From Macrostomum lignano (taxonomy: Eukaryota): a DNA stretch of 64,000 nucleotides. The notes under the pieces were generated by a model, which saw nothing but the letters and a program-made list of their open reading frames with translations, did not search any database and had not been told where the DNA came from. Below are positions 10,379 through 58,385 of the stretch, one piece after another. The stretch covers positions 163,433-227,432 of the forward strand of contig NIVC01001052.1 in assembly GCA_002269645.1 (NCBI GenBank), in the 5' to 3' direction. Each line of letters begins with the position of its first letter. Position 1 is the stretch's first letter. Both the position numbers and the translations under genes were made by a program.

Positions 10379-13300
10379 TGGGCTTATTGCTTAAAATATA
10401 TCAAAATTATTAATTATTAATTCATTTGTCTATGGTAATTTGTTGTAATTTAATGTCTTCAATGTGATCTTTCTCTCATTCTTACTTACTACTGATGATA
10501 TCTTATAGAGCCACTGAGCTAGATATTCTTCTTTCCTTTTTCAAAGAAATAAAGGTTTCTCTTCCATTTAGCAAATTGACTGCAAAAACTCAACTAGCAT
10601 CTAATACACCATTTTCCATTCAATTTAAACAAAACTTGCATTCTATTTTAGCAAGCTGACATTCAATTTCATCATTCTATATTTAGACCCTACCTATTTC
10701 AACATAATTCCAATTTATTAAGGACCCAATAAATTTTATCAAGCAGCATTCAATTTTGGTAATCCTATATTTTATTTTGTATCAAAGTAAGAGCATTCAT
10801 TTTGTCTATGGACAAAACTTGCTCTTGCATGCAGATTTCCTATTCAATTTTGGCATGCAGCATTCAATTTCAATATAACATTTTGGTTGGTGCAATTTTT
10901 TAGTATATACTGTATCAATCTTCAGAAGCCCCTTTCAAGCTAAGAACAAATACTATAGCTGTTTGAGGCTTTCTATAGTATCCCTCTTTAAACTTAGTGC
11001 TCTCTTTTAAGTTTGCTTTTAGAAAACAATTTTGTTTAATATATGAGCATGCACTAAATTCATTTTGAAAAGATATTACTGTACAAAAAAGAAGAATGAG
11101 TCAGAATGACAAGGAAATGTTTGAAGAAGCAGGATATAAAAAAAAATTGGTGACAAAGATAATGATGTTGAACCTGGGGTCCATTATAAAAGAGTCCGAT
11201 AGAGATAGAACCTACCTTCTTAATGTGCTTGAAAAAGGATAAGATTATGTCCATCTGGTATAAATTATAAAGTTGCTTTTGCCTCTACTCTCATATTTTC
11301 ATATTGAAAATGAATGCACCATATCAAAATTGAATAAGAAATCTGCATGTAAAAACAAGTTGGAATACAAAAAGGTTTAAGCCTAGTTGCCTATATAATT
11401 CCCAACAATCTAAAGCCCAAAGGCAAAACCTTCTTGAACCCCTAGTCAGTCAGCCAATTAACTGTCTTAGAAATAGCTATAGATTTGCATTTTATTAAGC
11501 AGTGCTAAAATCAATGCATGTTAAACCAATTAATAAGCTCTACTCAACAATCTAAAAGACAATAGGCCTACTATAATATTTGACCTACCAATGAAGGTCA
11601 GATGAAAAGGCTTTCTAAATAAAAGGCAACAATTGTTGACCTAGTATAATATATCATATACCCTATGAATATACCCTAGGCCTGGTATAATTCTATTGCT
11701 AGACTAGGTCCTAGGTTATCATGTGAATGTGCATTTAAATTGAGAGCTTATTTCCTATCCAGTGTATAAGTATATGTTCTACATTAAAAGTGGCAAATTA
11801 GGCCTACCTAGCTACAACCATATGTGAAGGCTTTAGCTTTGTAAGCCACAATGGTATTGGTAGATTAAGTTTATGGTTTTAGACTTTGATAAATGATCAT
11901 AGTCACAAGTGGCAAAGCCATGAGTAATTACTAATCATTATTATATTCAAAAAAATAGAAATATATTATTATAGACCTTATACACTATCATTTTTGGTTG
12001 ATCATTAAGAAATACCATTAAGTCACACCATTAAGGAACAGCATTATTATTTTGTGCCATAGATATACATAGTAGGTTTAATAGGACACTAAGCTCTCTT
12101 GTGTCAGGAAGATAGCCTTTTTCATGGAAAATTCCAATGCAAGACAGTTAGACATACAACATGCCAGTGCATTCCAGCACAACAGCAGGCAAGGGAGAAA
12201 AATCTAGCACAGTACATTGCAAGACAAAAAATGGCACAATTTGGTACAAGACAAAAGCTTCCAATTAGACAATATTTTCTCTGATAGAAAATTAGCATAT
12301 AATTTCTTTTTATTAGCACTTTTGTTTGCCACAAATTGCTGGTGTATTGATACCTTTTTTAATTAATTTAATTAACAGGTCATTGGTCAGATTGTTGACC
12401 ACATTCCATTTTGTCATATTGGATGATAAAGTGACCAGAAGCAAAGTAGCTTTGAAAAATAATATGATGAAGTGACCAAATATTTTGTTATGCTGGATAC
12501 TTTGTCATCAACCAATCAATCTATGAGATTTGAGTTAGTATAAAACTATTTTTTGTTTTTATTAACTATAAGCATAGTAAGCAAAACCAATCAATCGAGA
12601 GGTTTTATCAATTGAGATGACAAAATGACTGGGATCATTAGGATTCCAAGTAAATATGTTTAATTGCCATATTAATTCACTCGGAAGTTGGAACTAATAT
12701 AATTGGTGGATAACAAAATGACTCTATTAAGGTAGTGCATGCTAATTAAGATGACAAACTGACCCTAGTCAAAGTGAGCACCCCAGACACCCCAGATGAT
12801 GAAATGGCAGATGACAGAATGACTAGGAACCCATTTACATTGCATTTTCTATGAAACAGATTCAAATACAAGTTTTACCAGTATTTTTCAAATGGAAAAT
12901 TATTGATTTTTTGTTTTCTTTCAAAAAGTTGTGGTACACAGTGCAAGCAAACTTTTTTGATAAGAATAGTTCTGGCACATGGCCCAAACAAACTTTTTTA
13001 ATAGGATTTATTCTGGCGAATGGCGCAATCAAACTTTTTTAATAGGATTCATTCTGGTGCAGGCATGCCATGATCCTGACTATGGCTCTTATGGAGTTTT
13101 AGACAAAGCCTAAAGACTAGTCTAAAGTCTGCAAGGAGAGAAGGTTGATAAATAGTCACTGACTGTCTTGTTTAAGTAATTAAAGAACTAGGCATAAGAA
13201 GTGACTAAGAGAAATAAAAAAAATTAAGTGAAAATGCTTTTAATCAACTGGAAGAATCTACCAGACAATAGTTTAGATGGTGTCTTATTGGCTGAACTAA

Positions 13301-13427: not shown

Positions 13428-13875
13428 GCAACTACTATTGTATTAGCAACAATTTGGATATACCAACCAACTAAGATGACCACAAGTTACAAATGAAATT
13501 GCTAGTACCATCATCAAGTAGCAAGCTTAAATTAATATATGAAGTATATAATAGGCCTAGGCCCTAACCAATGTTTGCCAACTAATATTTTGATGAATGC
13601 ACCTTCAACTTCTAATAATAAGTACTAATAAAATAATTGTCTAATGCTAAATACTTTGTTATTTGTCAGCTTTATTGTTTTTATGCTGCTTAATATAGCT
13701 AATTATTGTTTTTTCTTCCTATATAGCAAAAATTACATATCCAATAGAAAGTTGGATATCTCCAATATAACTTTTTGGTTGCAGGAATGTCCCTGATATA
13801 TATCCATTTTATGATCTTCTAAAAGAAGCTTGTTTCTACAAAAATTGTGAATAGATAATATTTATATTATTCATT
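13428..13875. repeat. Dispersed repeat copy B (diverged duplicate of 9796-10235, left arm of the foldback only)
   Basis: Colinear alignment by eye. Differences are mostly C/T and G/A transitions plus a 13-bp AGGCCTAGGCCCT insertion. Confidence 0.85.
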
Positions 13876-14612: not shown

Positions 14613-17600
14613 TTAGCTATTCATGACTTCATATATTTTAGCTACACCAGTGAGCTCTTTTCTGACTCTTTTTTCATTTGTAGCATATCCTAACTTGTGT
14701 ACTTGCTTGTCATTTAGGAGGTACTGACAGAAGTATTTTTTTCTGAACTTTTCGGTTTGTGGACATTCGGTCAAGTAGTGTAGGATATCGGAACCATTTC
14801 TCGCTCCACACAGTCTACATGGTTCATGAGAGAAAATGTTGGGTGTAATTTCGCATTTCAGTTTTAGGAGGGTTGTTAGGAATTTTTTGTTTCTAAAAGT
14901 GCATGGAAAGTAATCTGAAAGGTCAGGCCTGCAGATTTTTTTGTAGAGATAGGCGTTTTTATAGAGTTTAATATGTTGCTGATTCTCTAGCTTTTGGCTA
15001 AGTTCTCTTTCTCTGTGTATCTTGAGGTGCTTTTTCACTAGGTATTTCTCGTTATTAAAGCTTTGGGAAAGTTTATCTTCAGTTAGTGCTTTTAAGTCTA
15101 TACTTTCCAGTTTCTTTAGTATATTTGTTTTCCATGGATTTTTTTGGCTGGTGTTTGAGTAGAAAATTTCTAGTGTCGTTTGGCAAAGTTTTTGATGTCT
15201 AATCTTCAGCCAGTAGGTAAGATAGGTTTTAGCAATTCGTTGGGAGATTGGAGTAAGCTCAAGTTCTGATGATATCACACTGTTGCTAGCAAATTTTGGT
15301 AGATTGAGGAGATATTTGTAGAATTTCAGCTGAATGTTATCAATAGCTTTTGTTTCAGAAATGGTAGCCAGAGGGCCCCAGAGCTCACAGCCGTACGTGA
15401 TAACGGGGGTGACAAGCGCGTCGAATAGTCTGCGAATGAGTGTGATGTCCAGGGACGTATTTTTTACCTTGTGGAGTAGGGAAAACATAGCTGAATAACC
15501 CTGCTTAGTTTGATGTTCAATACATTTTTTAAAGCTGTTTTTTGGTTCAAAAATAATTCCCAGGTATTTAAATTCATTTACTTCCTCTATTTCTTGGTTG
15601 TCGTAGATTATTTTTGTAGCAAAACTTTCTGTGTCATTTTTTTGTCTGGTACTGCCCTGCATAAACTTTGTTTTGCTTGCATTAACTTTCAAGTAGTTTT
15701 GCTTGCAGTAATTTTCCATAGTTGTAAATGTGTCTTGAAGTTCATCTTTGTTTTTAGCTAGAATGGCTTGATCGTCCGCAAAGAGCAGGATGAGTGGGAA
15801 AGCAGATCTCGTAAGAGAGCGCCTAGCGCTAGAGAGTTCAAGATATTCAACAATGTCGTCAATATATAGTTCAAAAAGGATGGTAGAGAGAGGGTTACCT
15901 TGAAGAACACCTTTAGATATTGGGATTGGCTGGGTTTCATCATCATCATCATCTTTCTTTAGAATGAAACAGGCATTTTTATGCATGTTCTTGATAAGTT
16001 CTGTCATTTGACCTTTAATACCTTGGTTATCCGTTTTGTGCCAAAGGGTCGGTTGATTTAAGCTATCGAAGGCTTTTTCATAGTCAACAAAACCGATAAA
16101 GAGTTCATTTTTGTTGTAGATGGACTGGTTTATAATGTTGTAAAGATTAAAACATTGGTCGATTGTGCTGTGATTGGGCTTGAAACCGTATTGGTATTTT
16201 GATATAAGATTGTTAGCATATGCTAGGTTTTCAAGTCTGGATTTAATAATTTGGCAAAAGAGCTTGCCAAAAATTGGTTGAATGCAGATTCCTCTGTAAT
16301 TGTTGGGGTCGGCACTGCTGCCTTTGTTTTTATAAATCGGATGAAGAGTATTTGTAATCCAACTAGTTGGAAAGGTTCCTTGTTTGAGTGCTTCGTTGAA
16401 AAGTGAGCATAGGAGGTCAGTAAGTTCGTTTTCAAGGTATTTGAGTGTTTCTACATATACTTTATCATGCCCAGGTGCTTTGTCGGTTTTGAGCTTTTTA
16501 ATATGTTTTATAACTTCTTCTTTGGTGAATGGGGCATTGAAATCCTCTAAATTAGTCAGAATAGGGTTGTCAAGGTGAAGATTGTATGCTAGTCTAATGC
16601 TGCTGTCTTGTTCAGTTACAAGATTTTGAAAGTGTATGACAAATTTTTCGTCAATTGCTGCATTGTTATTGGGGCGGTTATGTGGTTTCAGTAATTGCCA
16701 AAGCTGTCTTGTATCATTTTGAATATAAGCCTGGTTGATCATGTTTTCTGCACACAGTATTGATTCATGTTTCCAAGAAATCAAGCTTTTTTCATATGTT
16801 TTTTTAAGCTGTATTTTGGATGCGAGGTTGCTACTTGTGGGGAACATCTTATATCTTCTGCTGGCATGCCTGGTGGCATTTCTCAGGTCTTTAAGAAATT
16901 GTGGCAATGCTGAACAGAGAGGGTTTTTTGTTTCTACTGTGATTTTACTTTGGATTTGCTGAACTTTCTTGCTTAAATTATGGATGAAAGCTGGGTTTTG
17001 CATGTCGAGATTTGGGATTTTATTCTCCAGATCCTTTAGATCATCTGAGAAGCAATTGATATGTTTTTCTTGTTGTGGGGTGGGTTTATCTAGTTTTCTT
17101 AATATCCGGAATTTTGTTCTTTGGTTATTGGTTGCTTGTTTTGTTTCTGTAATCTCTGCTGTGAATTTACATGATAATGAGAGTATAATTTGATTGTGGT
17201 CACTAAGGTAAGTATGGTTTCTTACTTTAAAGTCTTCAAAGTGCTCAAGTAAGTTGCTAGAGACAAAACAGAGGTCAATTACAGATGAACCAGTTTTGGA
17301 GATAAAGGTAAGTGTTCCAGTTGCATCAGATAGGGATCTACCATTGATTATATGCAAGTTATATGAGTTTGTGATTTGGTTTAATAATCTACCACTTTTA
17401 CAGGTTTTTTTGTCTTGGCTTTGCCTATAGAGTGAGATATTTTTTGCCTTTAAAGTGCTTATTCTATGCAAATCTATATGATCAGTATTGTAAGTATGTG
17501 CATTAAAATCTCCCACCAGGATTATGTTTTCTTCAGAATGATGTGCATCAAGTATTAGTGCTAACTGTTCCCAAGACTCTTCTTCATAGTATTTTGAAGA

Positions 17601-18197
17601 TGTTGGTGGTATGTAAGAGTTGATAACAGTGAAATTTTTGCTTTTGTCCTTTTTGTTTTTAAAGTTTAATGTCAAAAAATTGTTGTAATTATTGAATGAC
17701 TCAGTCACATTGAAATGTGTTTCTAGTGATTTTTTATAAGCAGTCAGTAGGCCGCCAGATGCCCTACCAGTAGAACTGCTTCCTTTTTTGTTTGCAGACT
17801 TTTGGAAAATTGTGTAGTTGTCACGCAATTTGTCAGTGCTGAGAAGCCTATCATTGCTTTTTGTGTCAATTATCCAAGTTTCTTGAAGGCAGAAAATATC
17901 ATGCTTAAAAATTGGTTCAGCTTCTAACAATTCAAGCTTGGGAATCATCACTGAGTCTTTTATAGTATAAAGTCCTGTAATATTCCAACTGCTAATTGTG
18001 AAATTTTGTTTAATCTTTTTAATATTGAGTTCAGAGAGTTTTGATTTAGTGTTTTGAGATATTTTTATGTTCCTATGAGTGATACTATTATTAATCAAGA
18101 TAAGATAATCTCTAGTGTACTGAATCCGCTTCTTTTTAGTCCTATTAGCATCAGTAGATTTATTAATACATCTAGTATCAAAAAGGTCGGAAGTCAA
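14613..18197 (-). CDS. LINE ORF2: APE endonuclease + reverse transcriptase + C-terminal CCHC-like finger (1194 aa open frame)
   Basis: SWNITGL, CLQETW, LVGDFNAH, SVIDLCF, SDHNQI (APE). QYGFKP, FVDYEKAFDS, GVLQGNPLS, LLFADD, FKYLGI (RT). CRLCGARNGSDILHYLTECP at the C-terminus. Confidence 0.96.
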   Translation of the reverse strand: MTSDLFDTRCINKSTDANRTKKKRIQYTRDYLILINNSITHRNIKISQNTKSKLSELNIKKIKQNFTISSWNITGLYTIKDSVMIPKLELLEAEPIFKHDIFCLQETWIIDTKSNDRLLSTDKLRDNYTIFQKSANKKGSSSTGRASGGLLTAYKKSLETHFNVTESFNNYNNFLTLNFKNKKDKSKNFTVINSYIPPTSSKYYEEESWEQLALILDAHHSEENIILVGDFNAHTYNTDHIDLHRISTLKAKNISLYRQSQDKKTCKSGRLLNQITNSYNLHIINGRSLSDATGTLTFISKTGSSVIDLCFVSSNLLEHFEDFKVRNHTYLSDHNQIILSLSCKFTAEITETKQATNNQRTKFRILRKLDKPTPQQEKHINCFSDDLKDLENKIPNLDMQNPAFIHNLSKKVQQIQSKITVETKNPLCSALPQFLKDLRNATRHASRRYKMFPTSSNLASKIQLKKTYEKSLISWKHESILCAENMINQAYIQNDTRQLWQLLKPHNRPNNNAAIDEKFVIHFQNLVTEQDSSIRLAYNLHLDNPILTNLEDFNAPFTKEEVIKHIKKLKTDKAPGHDKVYVETLKYLENELTDLLCSLFNEALKQGTFPTSWITNTLHPIYKNKGSSADPNNYRGICIQPIFGKLFCQIIKSRLENLAYANNLISKYQYGFKPNHSTIDQCFNLYNIINQSIYNKNELFIGFVDYEKAFDSLNQPTLWHKTDNQGIKGQMTELIKNMHKNACFILKKDDDDDETQPIPISKGVLQGNPLSTILFELYIDDIVEYLELSSARRSLTRSAFPLILLFADDQAILAKNKDELQDTFTTMENYCKQNYLKVNASKTKFMQGSTRQKNDTESFATKIIYDNQEIEEVNEFKYLGIIFEPKNSFKKCIEHQTKQGYSAMFSLLHKVKNTSLDITLIRRLFDALVTPVITYGCELWGPLATISETKAIDNIQLKFYKYLLNLPKFASNSVISSELELTPISQRIAKTYLTYWLKIRHQKLCQTTLEIFYSNTSQKNPWKTNILKKLESIDLKALTEDKLSQSFNNEKYLVKKHLKIHRERELSQKLENQQHIKLYKNAYLYKKICRPDLSDYFPCTFRNKKFLTTLLKLKCEITPNIFSHEPCRLCGARNGSDILHYLTECPQTEKFRKKYFCQYLLNDKQVHKLGYATNEKRVRKELTGVAKIYEVMNS

Positions 18198-18245
18198 TGA
18201 AGTTCAAAAAGCTTTGATGAAGGGGACTCCCTTCTTATATGCAAT

Positions 18246-19088
18246 TCAAATGTTTTTCTCACCATCTTCTTTCCGTTTTTTCAGCTCTTTGATGACCTTC
18301 TGCTTGTACGTACGTTCCTTCTCTGTTAGGTCGTTCTCTATTCTGACTCTTTGATAGGCAGAACCAGTTTCCCGCAGGTTTTTTAGGTTGCCGAAGAAAG
18401 CTGCTTTGTCACTTTCGTTTGCAAGGCGAACAACCAGGGGCCTCGGCCGGTTGCTAAAAGGTTGCTCACGGCCAAGTCGTTTGGTGGCGATAATTGGCAC
18501 TGTTGATGGGGTGATCTTCAGTCCATCTCGTAGCAAGTTCTCAAGCTCCTCCGTCTCTTGCAATCCGAAAATTATTATATTATTTTTTTTAACATTTCGC
18601 AGATTCACTTCTTCTACAATCTCATCGAAGCTTATGTCGTACGTTATTGTTTGTTTGCCATTTTCGATTGACTCGAGCTCGGCGATGCGTTCCTCCAGGG
18701 CGTCCAGTTTAGTATTGATGGCTTTTAATTGCTCTATGTTGTTGATGAGCGCACGCGCGTGCACCTTACAGTCGCGACAGGTCCAGATGAGCCCATTGTT
18801 GCTGGGGCCATTAGCGATTGCGGTAAACACAGGCTTGGCTAGTCCAGAGCAGGCCTGGTGGCACCAGCGGTGACAGCTCTCGCACTCGATGCCCTCGTGG
18901 ACTTCAACGTTGCAAGCAAGGCAGCTACTGTCCTCGGTCTCTCGTCGGGATTTGGATCGCGGCGGAAGGGATGCACCTGTTGGTGAAACATCGTGGACTT
19001 CCGTGTCATTTTTTCGTTTGCCTTTTTGCGACATGTCGTTCTCGGATTGTGCGTTTTCATTTGACATTTGAAACATCCAATGAAACAT
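18246..19088 (-). CDS. LINE ORF1: PHD finger + coiled coil + RRM-like domain
   Basis: CLAC..IECESCHRWCHQAC..WTCRDC (PHD), then a heptad-rich helix, then NIIIFGLQE..RLGR..RPRPLVVRL..RIENDLT, typical of LINE ORF1 proteins. Confidence 0.92.
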   Translation of the reverse strand: MFHWMFQMSNENAQSENDMSQKGKRKNDTEVHDVSPTGASLPPRSKSRRETEDSSCLACNVEVHEGIECESCHRWCHQACSGLAKPVFTAIANGPSNNGLIWTCRDCKVHARALINNIEQLKAINTKLDALEERIAELESIENGKQTITYDISFDEIVEEVNLRNVKKNNIIIFGLQETEELENLLRDGLKITPSTVPIIATKRLGREQPFSNRPRPLVVRLANESDKAAFFGNLKNLRETGSAYQRVRIENDLTEKERTYKQKVIKELKKRKEDGEKNI

Positions 19089-24928: not shown

Positions 24929-25750
24929 ACAACAACAAAAACAACAAGGTACTTCTCTTGCCAGCCACGCAGTAGCCAGAAAGGGGGAAGGGGCAGTCAG
25001 AAAGCGCGTCTCTGGGCCATTGCCCTCAGGAAGCATACATGCGCAACCTCCAAAATTCGGTCGGCCATGCGACTTAGTTTTAACAAAAATGCGACGTAGT
25101 TTTTGGCCAAAAATGCGACTTACATGTAATAAAAACTGTAAAGCAAAATTAATGCAACTTTGGGTAAACGGCAGGAGTAACTATAACTGTTTTATTAGGG
25201 CAAAATGCCTCGTCAGCTACTTAGTAATACTACTTAGGTTTTTTTGGGTGGGCATTTTTGCGACTTCCTTGATTGGCTGCCAAATCGGTCGGCCGGATCG
25301 GCCGACTCGGCCGACTGTTGCGCATGTATGTCAGGAAGTCGCATCCCCCTGCTTGGTCTGGGGTGCCAGCATCACTCAGAAGTCGGTCAGGGTATCGCAC
25401 CGTTCACCCTTGGCCTTGCCTCTGCAGTCCCTGCAGCTTGAGCAGTAGCACGTCGTGTAGCAGCTCAGGACAGCGGGCCTCCGACTGGATGATGTGGCCA
25501 GCCAGTTGAAGTCGCTGCCCATATAGCAGGTTAGAAGGCTGCATCAGGCGCGCCCTAGTGTAGAGCGTGGCATTGGTCTCGCTGCCTGGGCCGCTGCGCA
25601 CTCCGAAAGCCGCACGCAGCATTGCCGCATGTGCAGCATCCAGCTGCCTCTCCAAGGCGTCCGTCAGGGTTCAAGTCTCGGCGTTGTACAACAGGACAGT
25701 CTTGACAACTGCCTGAAACAGCCGAGCCTTGAGCCCGTCGTCCAACTGCA
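24929..25750 (-). mobile_element. 5'-truncated RTE-clade LINE 3' fragment, interrupted by a hAT MITE
   Basis: KARLFQAVVKTVLLYNAET*TLT..LDAAHAAMLR..RLQLAGHII, the RTE C-terminal region. (TTG)n-like tail at 24929-24947. Confidence 0.8.
25034..25330. mobile_element. 297-bp hAT MITE, same family as the 29934-36339 element
   Basis: 14-bp TIR CATACATGCGCAAC/GTTGCGCATGTATG. Perfect 8-bp TSD TCAGGAAG (25026-25033, 25331-25338). Confidence 0.95.
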
Positions 25751-28321: not shown

Positions 28322-31300
28322 ATGCCTGTTGAACTAAGAGCTGAGCTAACTCAAGGCAGCATATTTCTAGCTGGAGAGCCATTAGTATGCAAGATATGCA
28401 TTTCAAATTGTGACCAGACTTATGAGTAAGTTTGTAATAAATTACTTATAATAAATTTACAAAAGTCTGCTTTTTTAACTGACTAGGATAGCAAGAATGC
28501 AAAATAGAATTCTCCTAGATGAAGCATTTTTATTTAGAAGTGAGAAAAATTCAGCATTTTCCTACGAGCTTTGAGAATTCAGCAATTCCTTCATGAGCCT
28601 TGACAATTCAGCCATTCCCCATGAGCCTTGACAATTCAGCAATTCCTTCATGAGCCTTGACAATTCAACAATTCCTTCATGAGCCTTGACAACTCAGCAA
28701 TTCCCCATGAGCCTTGACAATTCAGCCATTCCCATGAGCCTTGACAATTCAGCAATTCCTTAATGAGCCTTGACAATTCAGCAATTCCTTCATGAGCCTT
28801 GACAATTCAGCAATTCCTTCATGAGCCTTGACAACTCAGCAATTCCCCATGAGCCTTGACAATTCAGCCATTCCCATGAGCCTTGACAATTCAGCAATTC
28901 CTTAATGAGCCTTGACAATTTAGCAATTCCTTCATGAGCCTTGACAATTCAGCAATTCCTTCATGAGCCTTGACAACTCAGCAATTCCCCATGAGCCTTG
29001 ACAATTCAGCCATTCCCATGAGCCTTGACAATTCAGCAATTCCTTCATGAGCCTTGACAGTTCAGCAATTCCCATGAGCCTTGACAATTCAGCAATTCCC
29101 ATGAGCCTTGACAATTCAGCAATTCCCATGAGCCTTGACAATTCAGCAATTCCCATGAGCCTTGACAATTCAGCAATTCCCATGAGCCTTGACAATTCAG
29201 CAATTCCCCATGAGCCTTGCCATTCCCATGAGCCTTGACAATTCAGCAATTCCCCATGAGCCTTGCCATTCCCATGAGCCTTGACAATTCAGCAATTCCC
29301 ATGAGCCTTGACAATTCAGCAATTCCTTCATGAGCCTTGAAAGTTCAGCAATTCCCATGAGCCTTGACAATTCAGCAATTCCCATGAGCCTTGACAATTC
29401 AGCAATTCTCATGAGCCTTGACAATTCAGCAATTCCCCATGAGCCTTGACAATTCAGCCATTCCCCATGAGCCTTGACAATTCAGCAATTTCCCATGAGC
29501 CTTGACAATTCACCCATTTCCCATGAGCCTTGACAATTCAGCAATTCCTTCATGAGCCTTGACAATTCAGCAATTCCCATGAGCCTTGACAATTCAGCCA
29601 TTCCCCATGAGCCTTGACAATTCAGCAATTCCCATGAGCCTTGACAATTCAGCCATTCCCCATGAGCCTTGACAATTCAGCAATTCCCCATGAGCCTTGA
29701 CAATTCAGCCATTTCCCATGAGCCTTGACAATTCAGCAATTCCCATGAGCCTTGACAATTCAGCCATTCCCCATGAGCCTTGACAATTCAGCCATTCCCC
29801 ATGAGCCTTGACAATTCAGCAATTCCCATGAGCATGAGCCTTGACAATTCAGCAATTCCCATGAGCCTTGACAATTCAGCAATTCCTTTATGAGCCTTGA
29901 CAATTCAGCGATTCCCCATGAGTCTGTTCCCCACATACATGCGCAACAGTCGGCCGAGTCGGCCGATCCGGCCGACCGATTTGGCGGCCAACCAAGTAAG
30001 TCGCAAAATTGATTAACCGCCAAAAAAAACGAAAAAACAAAAGACGAAAAAGGGGAAAGGAAAAGGAAAAAAACGAGAAAAAGGGAGCAAAGAGAAAGAG
30101 AAAAACACAAAAAGAGTTGTAAGTGCTGTAAGTTGCAGCACTGAAGACAAGGTAAGTCGCACCGAGGGCGAGCTAAGTCGCACCGAGGGCAAGCTAAGTC
30201 GCAGCAGGACCGAGCTAAGTCGCATCGAGGGCGAACTAAGTCGCACCGAGCGAGAGCTAAGTCGCACTAAGGGCGAGCTAAGTCGCACCGAGGGCAAAAT
30301 AAGTCGCACCGAGCGAGAGCTAAGTCGCACTAAGTCGCAGCAGGACCGAGCTAAGTCGCACCGAGGGCGAGCTAAGTCGCAGCAGGACCGAGCTAAGTCG
30401 CACCGAGGGCGAACTAAGTCGCACCGAGCGAGAGCTAAGTCGCACTAAGTCGCAGCAGGACCAAGCTAAGTCGCACCGAGGGCGAGCTAAGTTGCAGCAG
30501 GACCGAGCTAAGTCGCACCGAGGGCGAACTAAGTCGCACCGAGCGAGAGCTAAGTCGCACTAAGTCGCAGCAGGACCGAGCTAAGTCGCACCGAGGGCGA
30601 ACTAAGTCGCACCGAGCGAGAGCTAAGTCGCACTAAGTCGCAGCAGGACCAAGCTAAGTCGCACCGAGGGCGAGCTAAGTTGCAGCAGGACCGAGCTAAG
30701 TCGCACCGAGGGCGAACTAAGTCGCACCGAGCGAGAGCTAAGTCGCACTGAGGGCGAGCTAAGTCGCAGCAGGACCGAGCTAAGTCGCACCGAGGGCGAG
30801 CTAAGTTGCAGCAGGACCGAGCTAAGTCGCACCGAGGGCAAAATAAGTCGCACCGAGCGAGAGCTAAGTCGCACTGAGGGCGAGCTATGTCGCAGCAGGA
30901 CCGAGCTAAGTCGCACCGAGGGCGAACTAAGTCGCACCGAGCGAGAGCTAAGTCGCACTAAGTCGCAGCAGGACCGAGCTAAGTCGCACCGAGGGCGAGC
31001 TAAGTCGCACCGAGCGAGAGCTAAGTCGCACCGAGGGCGAGCTAAGTCGCAGCAGGACCGAGTAAGTCGCAGCAGGGCCGAGGCAAGTCGCAGCAGGACT
31101 GAGTTAAGTCGCAGAGCATCTTTAGGATTATTAGGATAGGATTAGTTTAGGATGAATTTAATGTATCACTTACTAGGGTGTAGGCTACGTGTGCATTAAC
31201 GCATCAATTTGAAAAATTAAGAATTACGAAGCCAGAAATGGCTAAGGAATAGAAATAGGGATAGAATAACTTATAAGCAGTAATTTTTCAGCCCTATTAC

Positions 31301-34300
31301 AATTGCAAATCATACTTTTAATAATATTTAATTAGCAAATTAAAACTGCAAGATTCTAACGGTCTTATATATGAACTTAGAAGAACTGTAGTCTTAATTA
31401 TTATGCATGTACCATTGTAATAATTGATTAAAATTGTAGCAGATTAAAACTGATAAAAAACTTTCAAAATAGTCCACTTAGCAAATCAGAATCAGAATCT
31501 TTATTTTCCTCGTCTACGTTGGATTCTTTTTGCCGTTGACCTCCAGGAGCATCAGAACGCCAGTGTTTTTTCAGCCAATCATTGACATAAATATCCGGCT
31601 TAAATTTCATCAGCGGAGGCCCATTTATTCGAATCCGTAGTAGATGCTCCAATGTTTTTGGTGCCAAGCGTGTTCTCCTGTCATAGGCAATGTGCTTATA
31701 GATAGAAAACCCTCTTTCAGCCTCAGCTGATGATATTGGCAAAGTTAACACAACCATAATTAGATTCTTTATTCTGGGCAGCCATTCAACAGTTCTTGTC
31801 TCTAGAAAGTGACTCCAAAATTTCACCGGACCTTTGCCTTTGTAGGCACAGAAGTCAACACTATGCGAAGTGATCAAACTTTTTAGGAGTAGACCGAACT
31901 GACCAGAGATTGTCCTTTCTGTAGCGCGTTCTGAAGCATCTGCATCTCTAGAGTCTGAATCAGAAAGATGGTCCTCTGTTTCAGATTCAGAGCTGTCATC
32001 TTCCATTCCAAACCGTCTAGCAAGAGGTATGATTCTCGAACTGTATGTAAAGACAGTATGTAATGTTTCAGCATTAGGCAATAACACTGGGTTGAGCACA
32101 TTAAATATTGAGTAGTCATCCTCAGGAAAATAATTACGCAGCTGATCAATTATGCTATCAATGATTCGACTGCGAATCTCATCCAGTGCTGGATAAGCTC
32201 CCATGTCAACAACACTGCCACGTCCACTAGCATCAAATAATCTATTTCTTAGAGATCTGTCTGCAGCAGAACCTGGTTGCTTCAACTCAAACCTCTCTGT
32301 TGGATCGCTGCTTCCAGGGCCGGAAGGACAAGCAAAGTTAGAATAAGATAGGTCTCTTGTGTGACATCCTGAATGGTATTCCAGCTGCGGATATCCATCT
32401 GCAGTTCCCAAAACTCGACGACACTTGCAGGAAGCCAAAAAGTCCACAATGCGAGGACCATTGTTCGTTTTTAAGGTTTCTAGTGAATGTATAAGGTTAG
32501 TGTGGCGTTCTTGCAAGCCAATAAATGTACCCTTGGCTCTTTGAAACTGCAAGGACTCAAATTCCAGTAATTTTAGAATGTCCATGAGAAATAGATGTAA
32601 TGAATAATACCGGACATTTTGCAATGTTTTCAATAATCCAGAGGCAGTTGCTTTACTTTCGTCATCAAAGCCTGAGGAAGGTGATTTGATATTTTCTAAA
32701 TTTGTCAGAAGCAAGTAATACGACTTTCGAATCACATCAAGAGCAGACACTTCCGATGCAACCCACCTGATGCGATATATTCTTTTTAATTCATAGAAAA
32801 CCAAGTTGAGTGCTTCCGAAGTTTGTGCCAAAGATGCCTTACGTTTAACAGCGTGGCTCATATAAAATTTGTGTAGAGAATTTATATTCTTATCGAGATG
32901 TTGCATAAATGGGAAGATTTCAAAGGCATGATAGATTGAAAGTTCTAACTTATGCGCTGCACAATGGTGCTGAAAAAATTGTTTGCTAGCCCAAGGCCTC
33001 AGTTGACTTATTAATCCCACTCGACTTCCTGTCATTACGGATGCACCATCAGTTGTCACCCCCATAGCCTTCGTTTGATTTCATCTTCTAGCTTGTCATC
33101 CGAAAATAAACGGATGAGAAGTTCATAAATGCTTCGTCCAGTCTCTACTTCAGTCAGACGTTTAAACCGATAAAAAAACATCAAAGGTTGGCTGTTTTCA
33201 AGAACTCTGAAGTATATCATGACGTAGCTGTTTGAATGAATATCAGACGTTGTATCTAGTACAATAGAAATCGGAAGATTGTCAGCACTTTTAATGTAAT
33301 TCACAAATGTCCGATGCATTGTATTACTGATTGATTCCACCATTGCTGCGGCACTTTTGCGATGCTTATGATGGCTCCCCATATCCAACCCATTTTTTAC
33401 TTGTAAATCAATTATATTTGGATGAGCACTGAATGGAATATTAGATTTGACTTCGGCATAAACTGTTGTCAAAACTCGGGCTGTTATTTCATCTCGTTTA
33501 GTTTTAGCTAGTCTAGCGGCCTCATTCATCTGTTTGAGTTGCTTTGCAAGAACTGAAGTATGTTTTTCCTTCATCCACTTTATGGCGTCACTGTGAAGTG
33601 TATTTGATGAATGTTCCTGTAGTTTTCTTCGTACGCTATCTTTTGCATGACCTTTGGGAATGTAGCCTTGTTCTGTTGCAAAAGCTATCTTACGTTGGCT
33701 CTCTAGATTTGTCTCCTTTTTCTTATGTGCACTCAAAAATTTTCTGCAGATCCGACATTGTATTCCAGATCTTGATAGATCTTCGGTGTTTTGAACATAT
33801 TGAAACCATGTCTTCATTTCTTGTGACACAAATTTTCTTGAAAATGATCTGCAATGGTCAAATTAGAGAATATTTTGGGATTTGGACTATTTGTGAGTAT
33901 CTAAAAGCAATATGCTAATAAGTGCAATACACAGTACACTATACATTAATTTACAGTTCGTCAGTTTCCATTTACTTACTGTGACTGGTGCATCTCCAAA
34001 GAATGTAACCACTCCTCTCGAAAACCAGATGTATCCTCCCAGTCCTTTTTAGGGAAAACTTCAATATTTTCGCCCATCATAGAGGAAGACGAGGGCTTTG
34101 ATGCTGAAGTGGCTAGACATGCGTCTGCAGATGTGCTTATGCATGGTATTTTTCTTTGCGATGGCCCTGCTTCTGCAGTATTTACTTGTACTATTTCAAC
34201 ATCACCTGAACCCCTTGAGTCGCTCAAATCTAAATCAACAATAGGACTTTGGCAAAGTGATCGTTTCGTTGATTGTCTTTGAATATTTACTTGCCTAATA

Positions 34301-37300
34301 ATTTCCACTTGTAGTTTGCTTGTTTGCTGGTCATTCTCCAACAACTCTCTTCTTTCCTGTACATTTGCAGCAGAGCAAAAATTAGAAGTTTCTGCAGCAG
34401 CAGTTTGAACAGCATGATCTCGATTAGCTGCTATTTGCTCTGAAAATTCATAGGACCTGGCCAATTCACTACGGTGTGAGCTTTCAGAACATGGAGCTGG
34501 AGCAGGAGCTAGTCGCATTTCGATTCTTTCTGTTGCTGATGAAGCAGATGCTAATGCTGAGTCTGCCAATGTACCTGCTTCTCTTGAAGGTGTATTTATG
34601 ATGGCTTCAATATTGTCCTCTAAAATCCAATGAGCACCTGAGCAGTCATTTTCTCTACCTGGAGTCAACTGTCCAAGTTTCCACCTTGTAAAAAGCAAAG
34701 GCTTTCGTAACTCACTGCTGGATTCAGGGCACCGGTTTATTGAATAGTCCTCATGACCAAGTTCATCCCATTCTCTTGCTGGCTTTAAGATGTAGTTGGG
34801 CTTGTCTCTTAGCCTACGATAAATGGACTCAAAAAATGTGCACCTGTTATTTTGTGTACTTCGTGCATAGATGATCATGTCATGCACATTGTTCCTAATA
34901 ATTTCAGCTAATGAGTTATCAATGATAATTTTATCTTCATAAACAGGTCTTCTTTGTGTTGCATGCATTTTAGCTAGTCGCAGTTTTCCAATGCTACTGG
35001 CAGTTGTGGAACTTGAACTGTCTGATTCTGATCTAGAAAAGTCTCGTTGATACAAGAGAATAATGGCCATAGCACTTTTACCATTCCCATTCTTTAATGC
35101 ATTTGGTTCTGTTGGAATTGTCTTACTAGCAGACTTGAAAAAATCAATGATGGATGACTGCGATGATCCACTAGGAGCGGAACTTGGCAGCCCATGTCTA
35201 GTTTTTCCCTGATACCCAATATATGTATCGGTAAAAAACATATCTGCTGCTTCCTGCTTCTCTTTTGATGCAATAACAAAGAAACTGCTGTCCGTTTTGA
35301 AGCCCGAGGACCGATAGAAGTCAGCAGAAAATGAAACCACAGGTCGTCTAAAATCGCCGCTATATTCTTGAACTCCAATCAGAAGAAAATCACGGAGTCT
35401 CACTGGCACTGATCCTAATAGCATTGCAGTTGTGGAACAAACTTTCTTCAGCTCAATGAACTCTGAAAATTCTTGAGATCCAATATTAGGCTCATCAGTA
35501 TTTAACTCATTTATAACAATTGAGCACTCACTCTCAGCTAGAATACCATTGATAGCTAGGATGCCACTTAGAATCAGTAGGCAAAGACAACTAAGGCTGT
35601 ACATCATTCTGTGAAAGATTAAGTCGAGTATATGATTTTGGTGATAAAATAAAATTGATTTATGAGTATTACTATATAAATAAAACATTTAAAAGCCCTT
35701 ACCTTTACCAATTCATGTACAGAAAGTAAGTGTAAATACAACCAATTGCCTTGGTAGTTTAGTTATATGCTCGTATCAGATGCAGGCAGACAGCATAGGC
35801 TGCCAAGGTGCTATAAGTTAAGGTTAACTTTCACTATTTGGCTTTACAGACTGCTTTTATCGCTGCATGCATTGACTTAGCCTTAGCTTGTGCCATCCTG
35901 TGCCATACAGCTATATATACATATGTATCTCTGCCACTCCCCACTTTTGCAACCTTACACTGTACAATCATGCCTAAAACACTCCGTGTCAAGTGTACTG
36001 TTCTAGTGCCACATGGGGTACAAATACGATTAGGAATGACAAGAGTCAAAACCATACATGCACAATAGTTGGCCGATATGGACGACTGATTTGGCGGCCA
36101 ACCAAGGTAAGTTGCAAAAATGCCCACCCAAATAAATACCAAAGTAGTATTAAGTAGCTGACGAAGCATTTTGCCTTAATAAAGACAGTCATAGTTACTC
36201 CTGCCGTTTACCCAAAGTTGCGTTAATTTTGCTTTCAGGTTTTTTTCATGTAAGTCGCATTTTTGGCCGAAAACTACGTCGCATTTTTGTTAAAACTAAG
36301 TCGCACGGCCGACCAAATTTTGGAGGTTGCGCATGTATGGTTCCCCATAAGCCATATGTTATCAAATTCCCTAGGAGTCTCGTGGGCTGAACTCTAACCC
36401 GATAATCCAATGACAAATGACAGGAGTCCAATGCTGGCATGGGCCAGTGTACAGCTTATTTGCATGTGCTCAATAACTAAAGCGCCTGCAAAAGCATCTC
36501 AAGCAGTTAATGGCGAGACCTCATTCATAGCTAATCGTGGCGAAACAGGCTTTACTTACATATCAACTAAGCCAAGCATACTGTTCTGCAATTTGGTGCT
36601 GCGGCCCGGCGAGTCAAAGTTCTGTAAGTACTATGGTGCAATCCAGTGGTAACTGGTACTTTTATATTATCTATCTGTATGCTGCTAGAGCCATGCTGAT
36701 CTTGTTATTTGTGCTTTGCAAACATAATCAACTCTACATATAACTACAAGTAGTCTAGAGCAGTTATCATATTGATCTGATTAATTATTGGAAAAGCTCT
36801 GTTTGAGTTAACAGGCTTGTAGCCTAGTGGTAAGAGCGTCGGACTCATGACTGAAAGGTCGGAGGTTCGATTCTCGACTCACTCGGAACAATTTGTGCCC
36901 TTGGGCAAGACACTTAACTCTGCATTGCTTCAGTTCACCCAGCTGTAAATTTGGTACAAGCATTAGCTGGGGTAATTGAGGGTGTGTGTGTGTGTGTGTG
37001 GCGACACCCCTGCCATTCTTTGGACTAAATAGTCGTAGGCAGCTGCGGCTGAGCTGTTGGTTGTACATCTGTTGCCCATTTAGTACAGACACAAGTTTTA
37101 TAATTAGACGCTGAAGTGTCTGGCTTTCCCGCTAATGTATAAACGTTTTTAACGACTGAAACGACTGTTGAGTCACGAGCGCATCACGAGTCAGAGTTGT
37201 AGAATCGTAAAATAGTTGTGAAAAAATCGTCCATGAGTCGTTGTGATAGCGCTAAACTTTCTACTAACTCGAGTAAACTAAATAGAGTTGTTATAAACGC

Positions 37301-38453: not shown

Positions 38454-38527
38454 AACTGTCCATGTCTCACGGCTGCAGATTTTTTATCGGGGTATCCTTG
38501 ACATGACTCACTCTTCTAAAGTTGAGG

Positions 38528-39305
38528 TCACTCACTACTCTGGGGCAGAGATCCCTCACTATTCTGGGGTAGAGATCCCTCACTAATCTGGGGTGGAGAT
38601 CCCTCACTATTCTGGGGCAGAGATCCCTCACTAATCTGGGGTGGAGATCCCTCACTATTCTGGGGCAGAGATCCCTCACTATTCTGGGGTAGAGATCTCT
38701 CACTAATCTGGGGTGGAGATCCCTCACTAATCTGGGGTGGAGATCCCTCACTATTCTGGGGCAGAGATCCCTCACTATTCTGGGGTAGAGATCCCTCACT
38801 AATCTGGGGTGGAGATCCCTCACTATTCTGGGGCAGAGATCCCTCACTATTCTGGGGTAGAGATCTCTCACTAATCTGGGGTGGAGATCCCTCACTAATC
38901 TGGGGTGGAGATCCCTCACTATTCTGGGGCAGAGATCCCTCACTAATCTGGGGTGGAGATCCCTCACTATTCTGGGGCAGAGATCCCTCACTACTCTGGG
39001 GCAGAGATCCCTCACTATTCTGGGGTAGAGATCCCTCACTATTCTGGGGTAGAGATCCCTCACTACTCTGGGGTAGAGATCCCTCACTATTCTGGGGCAG
39101 AGATCCCTCACTATTCTGGGGTAGAGATCCCTCACTATTCTGGGGTAGAGATCCCTCACTACTCTGGGGTAGAGATCCCTCACTATTCTGGGGCAGAGAT
39201 CCCTCACTATTCTGGGGTAGAGATCCCTCACTACTCTGGGGTAGAGATCCCTCACTACTCTGGGGTAGGGATCCCTCACTACTCTGGGGTAGGGATCCCT
39301 CACTA
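38528..39305. repeat. 24-bp minisatellite (AGATCCCTCACTATTCTGGGGTAG)n immediately after the RGP1 stop codon
   Basis: Direct tandem units. The 8-aa-periodic ORFs are artefacts. Confidence 0.96.
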
Positions 39306-39894
39306 TTCTTCCAATATCCATATCCTAAAATAGTTTGTATGTATTTAGCTATGTGATAGATTTTAGCTGTCCAGATTTTAGTAGTCCAGATGCCATCCAC
39401 TTCTGCCTTAAAAGCATGCTATGTTTCTCTTATAATTTGCTTTTTTTCTAGTCTGATGTTTAATATTTGGGAAATTGTCGACTATTATTAATTTATTCAA
39501 TATTTAGGATGCTTAAACATTCTGTAGTGCACTGGATTATGTCAGCTAATGTCTGTTAAGCTACTCTTTATTGCCAAATTAATAATTAACTTAACTCAGT
39601 CGATCACCAGCATAGAGCTTTATTTAATTTCAATATACTCCTCTCAAATGTATATAGCTAATTTGAACGTTTTTTTGCTTACTTGTTGTTAAGCTTGGTG
39701 AATGGAAGCATGAAATATTGACTACTTGTAGTAGCCCAATAAGCCGTTGATTTACCTGTATTTGACCAAATTGAACAAATAAAGACTAATTCTGTGTTAC
39801 TGTTTTCCAGCAGAAGCTTTCGATTCTTATTTTTAAAGACCCATACACAGTTCGGGAATATGCATGTAACCTAGCCATGCAGTGGACTAGAATT

Positions 39895-48553: not shown

Positions 48554-48593
48554 TACTACTACTACTACTACTATACTACTACTACTACTACTA

Positions 48594-48659
<66 letters not shown>

Positions 48660-49985
48660 ATTCCAGGTGGCCTCCCAGTGCCGCAAGCCGGAGATTATGG
48701 CTGACGCTGCCTACCTGGTACTCACTAAAGATTCGCGCACCTTCTCCGGCCAGTTCTGCATCGACGACGACGTGCTGCGCCGCGAAGGTGGCCTTACCGA
48801 CAAGGACCTTGAGCAGTACAGCTGCGTGCCCGGCGGCCAGCTGCTGCCTGATTTTTTCCTTGACGAGCCGGACGCAGCCAAGCGTGAGTGCTGTCATGGA
48901 CTTTTGTTTGCTGCGGCTTCTGGATTGGAAACTAGGCTTAATGGTCGATAGGAGGCTATGCTCAATAGCCATGGAACCCATGAGGCTCGATGACCATGGA
49001 ATCCATAAGGCTGAATGACCATGGAATCCATAAGGCTGAATGACCATGGAACCCATGAGGCTCAGTGAGCGGTAGGGAAGCCAGGAAGCTGAATGACCGG
49101 TAGGGAAGCCGGGAGGCGCAATGACCGGTAGGGAAGCCGGGAGGCGCAATGACCGGTAGGGAAGCCAGGAGGCTCAATGGCCGGTAGGGAAGCCAGGAAG
49201 CTGAATGACCGGTAGGGAAGCCGGGAGACGCAATGACCGGTAGGGAAGCCGGGAGGCGCAATGACCGGTAGGGAAGCCAGGAGGCGCAATGACCGGTAGG
49301 GAAGCCAGGAAGCTGAATGACCGGTAGGGAAGCCGGGAGGCGCAATGACCGGTAGGGAAGCCAGGAAGCTGAATGACCGGTAGGGAAGCCGGGAGGCGCA
49401 ATGACCGATAGGGAAGCCAGGAGGCACAATGACCGGTAGGGAAGCCAGGAAGCTGAATGACCGGTAGGGAATCCAGGAGGCGCAATGACCGGTAGGGAAG
49501 CCGGGAGGCGCAATGACCGGTAGGGAAGCCAGGAGGTGCAATAAACGGCAAACGCTGTATCCGTAATTGCAGCAGCCCCAACCAGCGCCAGTTCGGGAGC
49601 CCAGAGCGGCCAGCAGCAGCCTGGCGCAGACGTTGAAGCCTCCATGAAGCACCTGGCCACAGCCATAGACGTGGAGGCGGTGGGTCTGGTCAAAGGCCTG
49701 GTTGAGCTTCAGCTCACGGACCTGAACCGCAGTTGGCTGCTGAATCTGAAATCCATGCCTGGCGGTCTGTCCGAAATTCGTCCGGGCGACAGCGGCTCGA
49801 CAGAGAAGCCGGACACTTGCATGACAATGAAATCGGCAGACTTGCAGCAGCTGGTGTCCGGCAAGCTGTCCGCCACTGGCGCCTTCATGGCTGGCAAGCT
49901 GCGCATCACAGGCAACATGGGCGTAGCTATGAAGCTGGAGAAGGTCTTTCGCAAAGCTGTGGCTGCCTCATCTGCCAAGCTCTGA
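44442..49985 (+). CDS. HSDL2: Hydroxysteroid dehydrogenase-like 2 (SDR + SCP2). Exons 44442-44458, 47016-47225, 47988-48405, 48667-48883, 49573-49985; 424 aa
   Basis: FITGASRGIG, AAKTATAHPKLPGTIYTAAEEIE, GGIDILVNNASAI, YTMAKYGMS (YxxxK), NALWPRTAI, PDFFLDE, and a C-terminal SCP2 domain (AFMAGKLRITGNMGVAMKL). Phases are consistent (1275 nt). The 17-nt exon 1 is inferred from ATG + GTAAGT and is the least certain part. Confidence 0.95.
47340..47945. repeat. 30-bp minisatellite (CCCCAGATCCCCAAGTGTTTCTGATCTTCT)n followed by degenerate AGTCCCTAATCCC repeats, HSDL2 intron 2
   Basis: Direct tandem units. Confidence 0.93.
48421..48660. repeat. (ACT)n microsatellite making up most of HSDL2 intron 3
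   Basis: Direct. Confidence 0.97.
48960..49540. repeat. 25-bp then 28-bp minisatellite (ATGACCGGTAGGGAAGCCGGGAGGCGCA)n, HSDL2 intron 4
   Basis: Direct tandem units. Confidence 0.94.
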
Positions 49986-57172: not shown

Positions 57173-57634
57173 CTGCATAAAAGTGGGCGGAGCCTCGTGC
57201 AGCAGCTATTCGCCTTGAGCAGCGTCTTCTTGACAATAGTGAAAATTGTATAGCTCCTAATGCCTCTACGTATGAGGCATACAATTTTATTATGCACTTC
57301 TCAGAGTTCCAGTCAACAAAAGACAGTCGCGGCTCTTTAGCTCGTCTTCTTCTTCAATCTCCGCCCGGACCTAATTTCATTTGGCTTCTGATTTGCAACA
57401 GGTGACCGCACCTGCTTCCGCTGTGTTGCCAGGGCTGTCCGCATAGCTACTGAGTAGAAAGCAGGCAAGAAATCCCTTTGTGTAGAAATATTTCATGCTG
57501 TTTCAATGTGCATAGCGAAAGCAAAAAGTTTCAAAATATATTTTTACTAGTGCTACTTATAGTAGCAATCAGTGCATATTAAATGTTTTTTATAACAAAG
57601 CATAAAATTTCATCATGGATTTTCGACGAAAATT

Positions 57635-58300
57635 AACGGTGCCCGCATTGGGGTGAATGGCACATTCTCCAGGTGCCCGCATTGGGGTTAATGGCACATT
57701 CTCCAGGTGCCCGCATTGGGGTGAATGGCACATTCTCCAGGTGCCCGCATTGGGGTGAATGGCACATTCTCCAGATGCCCGCATTGGGGTGAATGGCACA
57801 TTCTCCAGGTGCCTGTATTGGGGTGAATGGCACATTCTCCAGATGCTCGCATTGGGGTGAATGGCACATTCTCCAGGTGCCTGTATTGGGGTGAATGGCA
57901 CATTCTCCAGGTGCCTGTATTGGGGTGAATGGCACATTCTCCAGATGCCCGCATTGGGGTGAATGGCACATTCTCCAGATGCCCGCATTGGGGTGAATGG
58001 CACGTTCTCCAGGTGCCTGCATTGGGGTGAATGGCACATTCTCCAGATGCCTGTATTGGGGTGAATGGCACATTCTCCAGGTGTCTGCATTGGGGTGAAT
58101 GGCACATTCTCCAGGTGCCTGCATTGGGGTTAATGGCACATTCTCCAGATGCCTGTATTGGGGTGAATGGTACATTCTCCAGATGCCCGCATTGGGGTGA
58201 ATGGCACATTCTCCAGGTGTCTGCATTGGGGTGAATGGCACATTCTCCAGGTGTCTGCATTGGGGTGAATGGCACATTCTCCAGGTGCCTGCATTGGGGT
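57635..58300. repeat. 34-bp minisatellite (GGTGCCCGCATTGGGGTGAATGGCACATTCTCCA)n
   Basis: Direct tandem units. Confidence 0.96.
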
Positions 58301-58385
58301 TTGAATGTTTTGAATACCTTTCATTTTTACAGTACGTGAACATTTTGTGACCATCTTTTATGTTACAAATTTGTTAACTAATTTA

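Follow-up and report, generated by a model that had tools for sequence, protein, structure and literature searches.

Cut-and-paste transposases are regarded as nuclear enzymes made up of DNA-binding and catalytic domains. In the hAT superfamily (Ac, hobo, Hermes and the Buster-like group, which is related to ZNF862, KIAA1586, FAM200 and ZBED5), the elements end in short terminal inverted repeats (TIRs), carry short subterminal repeats and are flanked by 8-bp target-site duplications (TSDs). They encode a single transposase, in which a zinc-finger region at the N-terminus precedes an RNase-H-like core and the hAT dimerisation domain lies at the C-terminus, and they give rise to internally deleted, non-autonomous derivatives. 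All of these traits, the zinc finger as a putative one, are shared by a 6,406-bp element of Macrostomum lignano, which occupies positions 29934-36339 on the minus strand of a 64,000-nucleotide stretch of contig NIVC01001052.1 (hereafter the window). Its predicted transposase differs from those of the superfamily in being about 540 amino acids (aa) longer at the N-terminus, where a signal-peptide-like leader, a lamin-tail domain (LTD) homologue and a linker are found. To our knowledge, a leader-plus-LTD module of this kind has been described neither for a hAT transposase nor for any other cut-and-paste transposase. Searches of 8.3 million papers for LTDs together with transposases or for hAT transposases with a signal peptide returned nothing relevant, and neither did a literature search for hATm. 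Taken jointly, the architecture (a leader-LTD-transposase fusion in a near-intact hAT element) and the family-level statements made below are, in our judgement, very probably correct.

Additional coding segments that are not part of the transposase have been described within the TIRs of other transposons, in the form of the second open reading frame (ORF) of PIF/Harbinger elements and of Pack-MULE transduplications. The LTD described here differs from these in that it is in frame with the transposase, occurs family-wide, shows the signature of purifying selection and is contiguous with the transposase in intronless members. For Buster elements, TSDs with a central TA have been reported; the TSDs seen here do not show it.

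The window locus is a genuine, recently mobile hAT element, as its TIRs, differing TSDs, near-identical copies at unrelated loci and deletion derivatives attest (Table 1). The TIRs were located by comparing copies; a generic inverted-repeat search did not reveal them. A second copy (L007, also in GCA_002269645.1) is 97.9% identical to window 36339-30634 over 5.7 kb, with unrelated flanks; past 30634 the similarity goes on through a satellite to 29934, ending exactly at the TIRs. These form a perfect 14-bp inverted repeat, which is identical in the window subfamily and in a subfamily with 70% aa identity, represented by the full element at L008. The TSDs, on the other hand, differ from insertion to insertion: that of L007 is CTTGGGTT rather than the TGGGGAAC of the window element, that of L008 is TAACATCC, and a small derivative of similar size (~297 bp) at L008:11122-11418 has TCCAGAAA. 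The window itself contains a derivative in which about 270 bp of the element's 5' end are joined to about 95 bp of its 3' end, flanked by TCAGGAAG at 25026-25033 and 25331-25338. Five insertions in M. lignano, the window element and four others, therefore each have their own 8-bp TSD, and the shared termini with differing TSDs at the four others are far beyond chance. One cluster at 90% identity comprises 18 annotated M. lignano proteins. The window copy is thus a near-intact, autonomous copy of a recently active M. lignano hAT transposon.

Table 1. Features of the leader-LTD-transposase hAT element and of its deletion derivative (positions in the window; 5' and 3' refer to the minus strand for the full element; MITE, miniature inverted-repeat transposable element; UTR, untranslated region; TRF, Tandem Repeats Finder; AF2, AlphaFold2; dN/dS, ratio of nonsynonymous to synonymous substitution rates).
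Feature	Position	Strand	Evidence
TSD, 8 bp, 5' side	36340-36347	TGGGGAAC read on minus strand	same 8-mer directly outside both termini
TIR, 5', CATACATGCGCAAC	36326-36339	-	L007 similarity begins exactly here; perfect reverse complement of 3' end
5' subterminal repeats, three TGCGAC(T/G)TA copies, 22-24 bp spacing	36251-36305	-	motif search
Putative 94-nt 5'UTR intron (GT..AG), or trans-splice acceptor, one base before ATG	35609-35702	-	sites present
Start codon and hydrophobic signal-peptide-like leader, aa 1-26, MMYSLSCLCLLILSGILAINGILAES	35530-35607	-	Kyte-Doolittle
Predicted LTD homologue with insertions, aa 27-322	34642-35529	-	hhalign, AF2, dN/dS, cysteines
Linker, aa 323-543: low-complexity stretch, weak basic cluster QRKIPC, conserved KDWEDTSGFREEWLHSLEMHQ at exon end	33980-34641	-	alignment A2
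Predicted intron, 131 nt, phase 2, GTAAGT..TTGCAG, in-frame TAA within donor	33849-33979	-	in-frame junction
Exon 2: zinc-finger region, RNase-H-like DDE core, hAT dimerisation domain (~31632-31781), stop 31466-31464	31464-33848	-	
G5 run, apparent 1-nt deletion, sole frameshift of the copy	33059-33063	-	L007 has G6
Internal 3' array, ~45 units of 21 bp, each with TGCGACTTA	30153-31113	-	TRF and motif search
TIR, 3', GTTGCGCATGTATG	29934-29947	-	comparison of copies
TSD, 8 bp, 3' side	29926-29933	TGGGGAAC on minus strand	
297-bp internally deleted, MITE-like derivative	25034-25330	+	blastn to L007 and reading of termini

The sole gene of the element lies on the minus strand and has two coding exons. 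The exon-1 ORF begins with an ATG at 35607-35605 (MMYSLSCLCLLILSGILAINGILAESECSIVINELNTDEP..EFIEL), runs for 543 codons that include IVINELNTDEP..EFIEL and INRC..TPGRENDC, and ends with a TAA at 33978-33976. This stop codon overlaps a GTAAGT that begins at 33979; a TTGCAG ends at 33849, and with 33980 joined to 33848, 131 nt are taken out and the reading frame stays open into exon 2 (..EMHQSQ, followed across the junction by SFSRKFVSQEMKTWFQY..). The predicted product then reads, in order, hydrophobic leader, LTD of about 300 aa, linker, zinc finger, RNase-H-like core and hAT dimerisation domain. Upstream of the ATG, conservation is poor in comparison with the ORF. A GT at 35702 and an AG at 35610-35609 would delimit a 5'UTR intron there, and its donor (AAAGGTAAG) is conserved in L007, L001 and L008.

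The transposase frame is broken once, at the GGGGG of 33059-33063 (..RRLWG / VTTDGASVMTG..). Restoring one G is justified, because L007 has six at this place and the annotated proteins P0003 and P0040 read through the run as RRLWGVTTDGAS; the repaired product is 543 + 794 = 1,337 aa. L007 has a combined 39+1-nt deletion in its N-terminal ORF and a 2-nt insertion in its zinc-finger region. In the P0003 cluster, four M. lignano proteins annotated at exactly 533 aa start at MGVTTDG, and the G5 state, which may be a true mutation or a homopolymer error, is therefore common to several annotated loci. Duplicated subgenomes, defective copies mobilised in trans or repeated homopolymer errors could account for this sharing. 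A first-pass annotation of the window had already placed the ORF, the splice sites, the overlap of TAA and GTAAGT and the G run, all of them correctly on the minus strand, and its product of about 1337 aa with one G restored agrees with the total above. The 5'UTR intron that it saw ending one base before the ATG has both GT and AG in place and a conserved donor, and remains putative, while its hAT element bounded by TIRs and TSDs now has exact ends.

Several lines of evidence bear on whether the two exons are joined into one fusion protein. The GTAAG at the end of the exon-1 ORF is conserved in L001-L003 (92% identical), in L004 (53% identical) and in the 70% subfamily (L008). L001-L004 are Logan contigs that end within or just past the intron, and linkage to the transposase lies beyond them. 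In L008, the annotated 1,313-aa M. lignano protein PAA51197.1 (P0046) is colinear with the predicted fusion: it carries the leader, INELN..EFIEL and NRC..TPGKENDC, followed by ..THQSA and, across the junction, YFSRKFVTNEMKTWFQY.. Its gene has a single 104-nt GT..AG intron, at the same codon as the window intron. The M. lignano annotation was built from RNA-seq-guided transcripts (PMC5730564). More distant relatives do without the intron altogether. P0006 (L005, from an ENA assembly; 36% identical) has both parts in one intronless ORF, with a leader and INEVN..EFIEL just upstream across a frameshift, and P0127 is an uninterrupted, intronless 1,086-aa ORF with both parts. Many matches that cover the N-terminal part only stop at the same ..RRKRRLS..DYSEE.EWETTKYF position, as would be expected if they were the first exon of a gene split in the same way and not proteins in their own right. 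The in-frame fusion through a 131-nt intron, as put forward in the first-pass annotation, thus gains support from the P0046 intron at the same place and from at least 37 homologues that have both parts in one polypeptide.

It could also be that two separate products are made and the fusion is rare or absent, in which case intron retention would give a secreted 543-aa LTD protein and the transposase would be a separate 784-aa protein, made for example by spliced-leader trans-splicing to the TTGCAG. The stop codon does lie immediately in the donor in all four lineages, and annotated proteins of 784 and 680 aa (P0040 and P0033) start exactly at MKTWFQY; trans-splicing is, moreover, very common in M. 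lignano (PMC5730564). However, a phase-2 intron with a GTAAG donor always creates a TAA, so selection need not be invoked to explain the stop codon. The same annotation also holds the 1,313-aa fusion P0046, the intronless homologues can make the fusion alone, and longest-ORF calling on unspliced or defective transcripts would likewise yield 784-aa models. We consider two separate products unlikely. For the same reason we rejected the idea that the TAA within the donor is a selected device: it arises automatically with a phase-2 GTAAG donor and is not evidence for a selected 543-aa product.

The C-terminal part of the predicted fusion is a recognisable hAT transposase. Its C-terminus matches the Pfam family Dimer_Tnp_hAT (PF05699) with an E-value of 3.6e-7 (30.3 bits, cut-off 21.4). 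The transposase part of the window is 100% identical to the annotated M. lignano protein PAA56523.1 (P0003), which has both PF27073 (the RNase-H-like core) and PF05699 on record, and IVLDTTSD, TTDGASVM, HCAAHKLEL, RIRWVASE and SSAEAERGFS can be read in the sequence; record and motifs together predict an RNase-H-like DDE core with CxxH and RW motifs. A zf-BED match is below the cut-off (E 0.76), and a C..C....H..H-like region (IQCRICRKF...HSSNTLH) is present. UniProt and NCBI label the M. lignano proteins of this cluster merely as hAT dimerisation or DUF4371 proteins.

The core is closest to the ZNF862/KIAA1586/FAM200/ZBED5-like group, with ZNF862-like and KIAA1586-like proteins as its nearest named relatives. 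This raises the question of whether the locus is an immobile host gene that was domesticated from a hAT element, as in the ZNF862/KIAA1586/ZBED type, a view that would also suit the distant member in L009, which shows no TIR or TSD. Against this stand the perfect TIRs, the five insertions with differing TSDs, the 97.9%-identical copies, the deletion derivatives and the cluster of 18 proteins, which leave domestication extremely improbable. For M. lignano it is refuted by the TIRs, the TSDs and the multiple loci, although it is possible for some distant members.

The N-terminal part of the predicted fusion is the unusual one. Its LTD region reads CSIVINELN..EFIEL..FFVIAS..NGNGKSAMAIILL..HDMIIYARS..SINRC..TPGRENDC. 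Among the matches of a profile search with the N-terminal ORF is a Branchiostoma floridae protein (P0177; LOC118427361, XP_035693005.1) consisting of a leader, eight Pfam LTD repeats (PF00932, E 7.5e-95), a transmembrane segment and a short tail. Comparing the transposon family alignment (A3) with these eight repeats by hhalign gave a probability of 99.5% and an E-value of 8.4e-23 over template columns 1-182, which is the whole repeat, and INELN-D-P, EFIEL, FFVIGS, NG..A..L, VD..vYs, S.sRC and TPG..N.C align in order. An AF2 model made from the 20 diverse sequences of A3 is beta-rich (pLDDT 80, pTM 0.82); a 3-sequence alignment had given a pLDDT of 31. We conclude from the profile alignment that the N-terminal domain is an LTD homologue of extracellular type, with large insertions, that falls below the Pfam threshold.

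The transposon domain and the B. floridae repeats share their motif order and an N-terminal leader. They differ in size, the repeats being about 180 aa long and the transposon domain about 300 aa, with large insertions and one or two extra conserved cysteines, and in context: the transposon LTD is a single copy fused to an enzyme, whereas the B. floridae LTDs form a repeat array anchored by the transmembrane segment. C256, C293 and C322 are conserved in 128 of 134, 132 of 135 and 130 of 130 sequences, respectively, and C28 in 67 of 89. When compared with L001, the N-terminal ORF has a dN/dS of 0.21, and with L004 one of 0.24; the value is 0.16 in its LTD part and 0.32 in its linker. As judged from these values (dN/dS ~0.2), the N-terminal ORF is under purifying selection.

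To see how widespread the module is, we searched 1.84 billion cluster representatives (50% clustering) exhaustively with a HMMER profile of the N-terminal ORF, which found 186 representatives at E<1e-3; a word-indexed homologue search with the N-terminal ORF or the profile returned just 2 and 9 proteins. Among the best 150 of the 186, 37 carry the LTD and the transposase in one polypeptide, many of them intronless, and Pfam hATC was matched in six of eight long homologues. The N-terminal module is also found in L007, L001-L004, L006 and L008. When compared with the window core, the cores of 14 of 17 LTD-bearing proteins score 243-420 bits and those of the other three 125-173 bits, against at most 170 bits for hAT relatives without an LTD, none of which has the domain. 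These core scores point to one old acquisition of the module, followed by co-inheritance with the core. The LTD is an ancestral N-terminal module of the transposase in this clade, not cargo. The clade is large and apparently undescribed, and may already have a Repbase or Dfam consensus under another name.

The first-pass annotation had offered both a cargo-bearing, unrecognised hAT family and a captured host gene as readings of the locus. The unrecognised family stands, while the cargo gives way to an ancestral transposase module. The capture fares worse. A one-off capture of a host secreted-protein gene fragment by transduplication, or splice-like sites arising by chance, had nothing in its favour beyond the initial impression from a single copy. 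We looked for other copies from which the N-terminal ORF is absent and found the module throughout the lineages examined, so that other copies and relatives do keep both parts. Its presence in L007, L001-L004, L006, L008 and the 186 representatives, the dN/dS of about 0.2 and the conserved intron position refute a one-off event, to which we give practically no credence.

Two opposing kinds of putative targeting signal are present on these proteins. At the N-terminus, the window leader reaches a best 10-aa Kyte-Doolittle mean of 2.93. A comparable leader (mean of 2.0 or more over 10 residues) is found in 60 of the 80 family members that have at least 10 residues before the conserved C-x-VINE motif, compared with 4.6% of control windows. 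Many of these leaders have a textbook n/h/c layout, with a hydrophobic h-region and then small residues directly before the mature domain. Further downstream, 14-18 aa before a WE(T/D)T..F motif, lies a basic cluster resembling a nuclear localisation signal (NLS; RRKRRL, RKRKIS, KKKMKK and similar), which in 23 of 50 members has at least four K/R in six residues. The hydrophobic leader seen in the first-pass annotation thus appears signal-peptide-like and conserved family-wide, and the LTD-like signature that it recognised is borne out by the hhalign match to Pfam-certified LTD repeats, though Pfam itself gives no match.

A signal peptide at the N-terminus combined with a basic NLS downstream is known from FGF3 and PTHrP, whose fate is set by signal strength or alternative initiation. 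The transposase would have the same combination of signals; the sequences are unrelated and the localisation of the transposase is predicted, making this a functional analogy alone.

What might such a combination do for a transposon? The mechanism that we prefer, though we hold it with some doubt, is that the leader and LTD act as a built-in limiter or router of transposase dose, through competition between the secretory pathway and the nucleus. The module would go back to a single acquisition from a gene for a secreted or cell-surface LTD protein, which supplied the leader as well. An endoplasmic reticulum (ER) signal peptide and a disulfide-type LTD would then compete with the NLS-like cluster that precedes the DNA-binding and catalytic part, and transposition would be left to the fraction that evades ER targeting and enters the nucleus. 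Isoforms without exon 1 could, in M. lignano, get there as well. The intron could also uncouple the products: its retention would give a 543-aa leader-plus-LTD protein, and translation from the first ATG in exon 2 a 784-aa transposase. Self-limiting mislocalisation, one of the readings offered in the first-pass annotation, likewise stands as a hypothesis.

Alternatively, the LTD may act within the nucleus, as an accessory that binds DNA, chromatin or the lamina and serves in target choice or in tethering to the nuclear periphery, with the leader being no working secretion signal but a membrane anchor or part of the fold. The module shares a polypeptide with the transposase in at least 37 representatives and is co-inherited with the core, and the NLS-like cluster is conserved. 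Lamin Ig-fold (immunoglobulin-fold) tails bind DNA and chromatin partners, and LTDs in bacteria are frequently found alongside nucleases and phosphoesterases, both of which speak for a nuclear role. However, the closest non-transposon relatives are the extracellular repeats of a protein with a leader and a transmembrane segment. The dispersed, near-invariant cysteines have no CxxC spacing and resemble disulfides rather than zinc ligands, and short h-regions followed by small residues are typical of cleavable signal peptides, not of anchors. A nuclear LTD is possible, then, but in our view also doubtful.

More far-reaching still, the transposases of this clade may truly enter the secretory pathway, where the leader would be cleaved and the LTD would form disulfide bonds, and this may belong to the life cycle of the element and go beyond dose control. 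Other cells might, for example, take up the exported protein, alone or in complex with DNA, from soma to germline or from one organism to another; it might otherwise be routed through the lumen of the ER and nuclear envelope. We think this very unlikely, but, if true, it would be a localisation strategy not known for any cut-and-paste transposase.

A number of points weigh against a leader-LTD-transposase fusion that limits its own dose. Splicing in the window copy is inferred from homology and from the annotation of a paralogue. Both M. lignano copies that we read are individually defective, each at a different place. Pfam detects neither an LTD nor any other family on the window's 543-aa ORF at E-values up to 1, and of 20 family members searched with Pfam LTD only one reaches an E-value of 0.012. 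Foldseek finds no LTD structure in the PDB for the AF2 model; its best matches there are Ig V domains, with E-values of 0.013 or worse and a TM-score below 0.2 over the query. Since a PDB sequence-profile search with the N-terminal domain also gave chance-level matches only, the LTD assignment rests on hhalign. The leader is called signal-peptide-like from hydropathy and from an n/h/c layout read by eye, and the basic cluster is weak in the window copy (QRKIP, compared with RKRP in P0001 and P0046). A scan for TIRs and TSDs around the distant member P0127 (L009) found none, while recovering its controls, and mobility is therefore shown for M. lignano only. Finally, a cleavable signal peptide without a stop-transfer segment should send the whole protein to the ER lumen, so dose limiting would require an inefficient leader or alternative isoforms.

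The element also contains repeats that may matter for its transposition. The TGCGACTTA in each unit of the 3' array is the same 9-mer as the three 5' subterminal repeats, and all are in one orientation. TGCGAC(T/G)TA has 51 matches in the window against 0.39 expected, every one of them within copies of the element: three in the 5' subterminal region, about 45 in the 3' array and three in the 25034-25330 derivative. They are putative transposase-binding sites. Copies differ in the length of the 21-bp array (472 indel columns separate the window element from L007), and a diverged form of it occurs in the 70% subfamily. A 27-bp satellite of about 50 copies (consensus AATTCAGCAATTCCCATGAGCCTTGAC, window 28548-29922) directly adjoins the 3' end of the element. 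The element probably inserted at the edge of this satellite, because its TSD resembles part of the 27-bp repeat.

Repeats are very abundant in the window, and the GC skew makes strong local excursions at 50-52 kb. A non-long-terminal-repeat (non-LTR) retrotransposon with long open frames, read by eye, lies at 14613-19088 on the minus strand; it has a 1,194-aa, endonuclease- and reverse-transcriptase-like ORF2 (14613-18197) and a 280-aa ORF1 (18246-19088). Three stretches (6693-9696, 10075-10382 and 13723-13858) match the flank of the paralogous hAT locus L006 (L006:13872-16754 and 4044-4288) at 79-89% identity and represent another dispersed repeat family, unrelated to the hAT element. A serine/leucine-rich low-complexity stretch is found at 6891-7847, and tandem arrays at 38467-39400, 48571-49693 and 57633-58343 translate as long repetitive ORFs (VRDLYPRI and GFPTGHSASWLPYRSL units). 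Outside the window, the ENA contig of the distant LTD-hAT relative P0006 also carries a Tc1/mariner-like transposase remnant (L005:735-1328, minus strand).

For M. lignano, a flatworm used for transgenesis, these results define a recently active endogenous DNA transposon with known TIRs and MITE-like derivatives, and correct the database annotation of proteins credited solely with a hAT dimerisation or DUF4371 domain. For the hAT superfamily, they reveal a diverse clade (at least 186 representatives at 50% clustering, nearly all unannotated) that appears to keep a leader, an LTD and an NLS-like cluster on its transposase, and that would illustrate cleanly how a transposon can capture an extracellular module of its host at the exon level. 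A working leader would amount to a novel means by which a mobile element controls or redirects the enzyme that it encodes; should the leader not work, the LTD would count as a new accessory module of a transposase.

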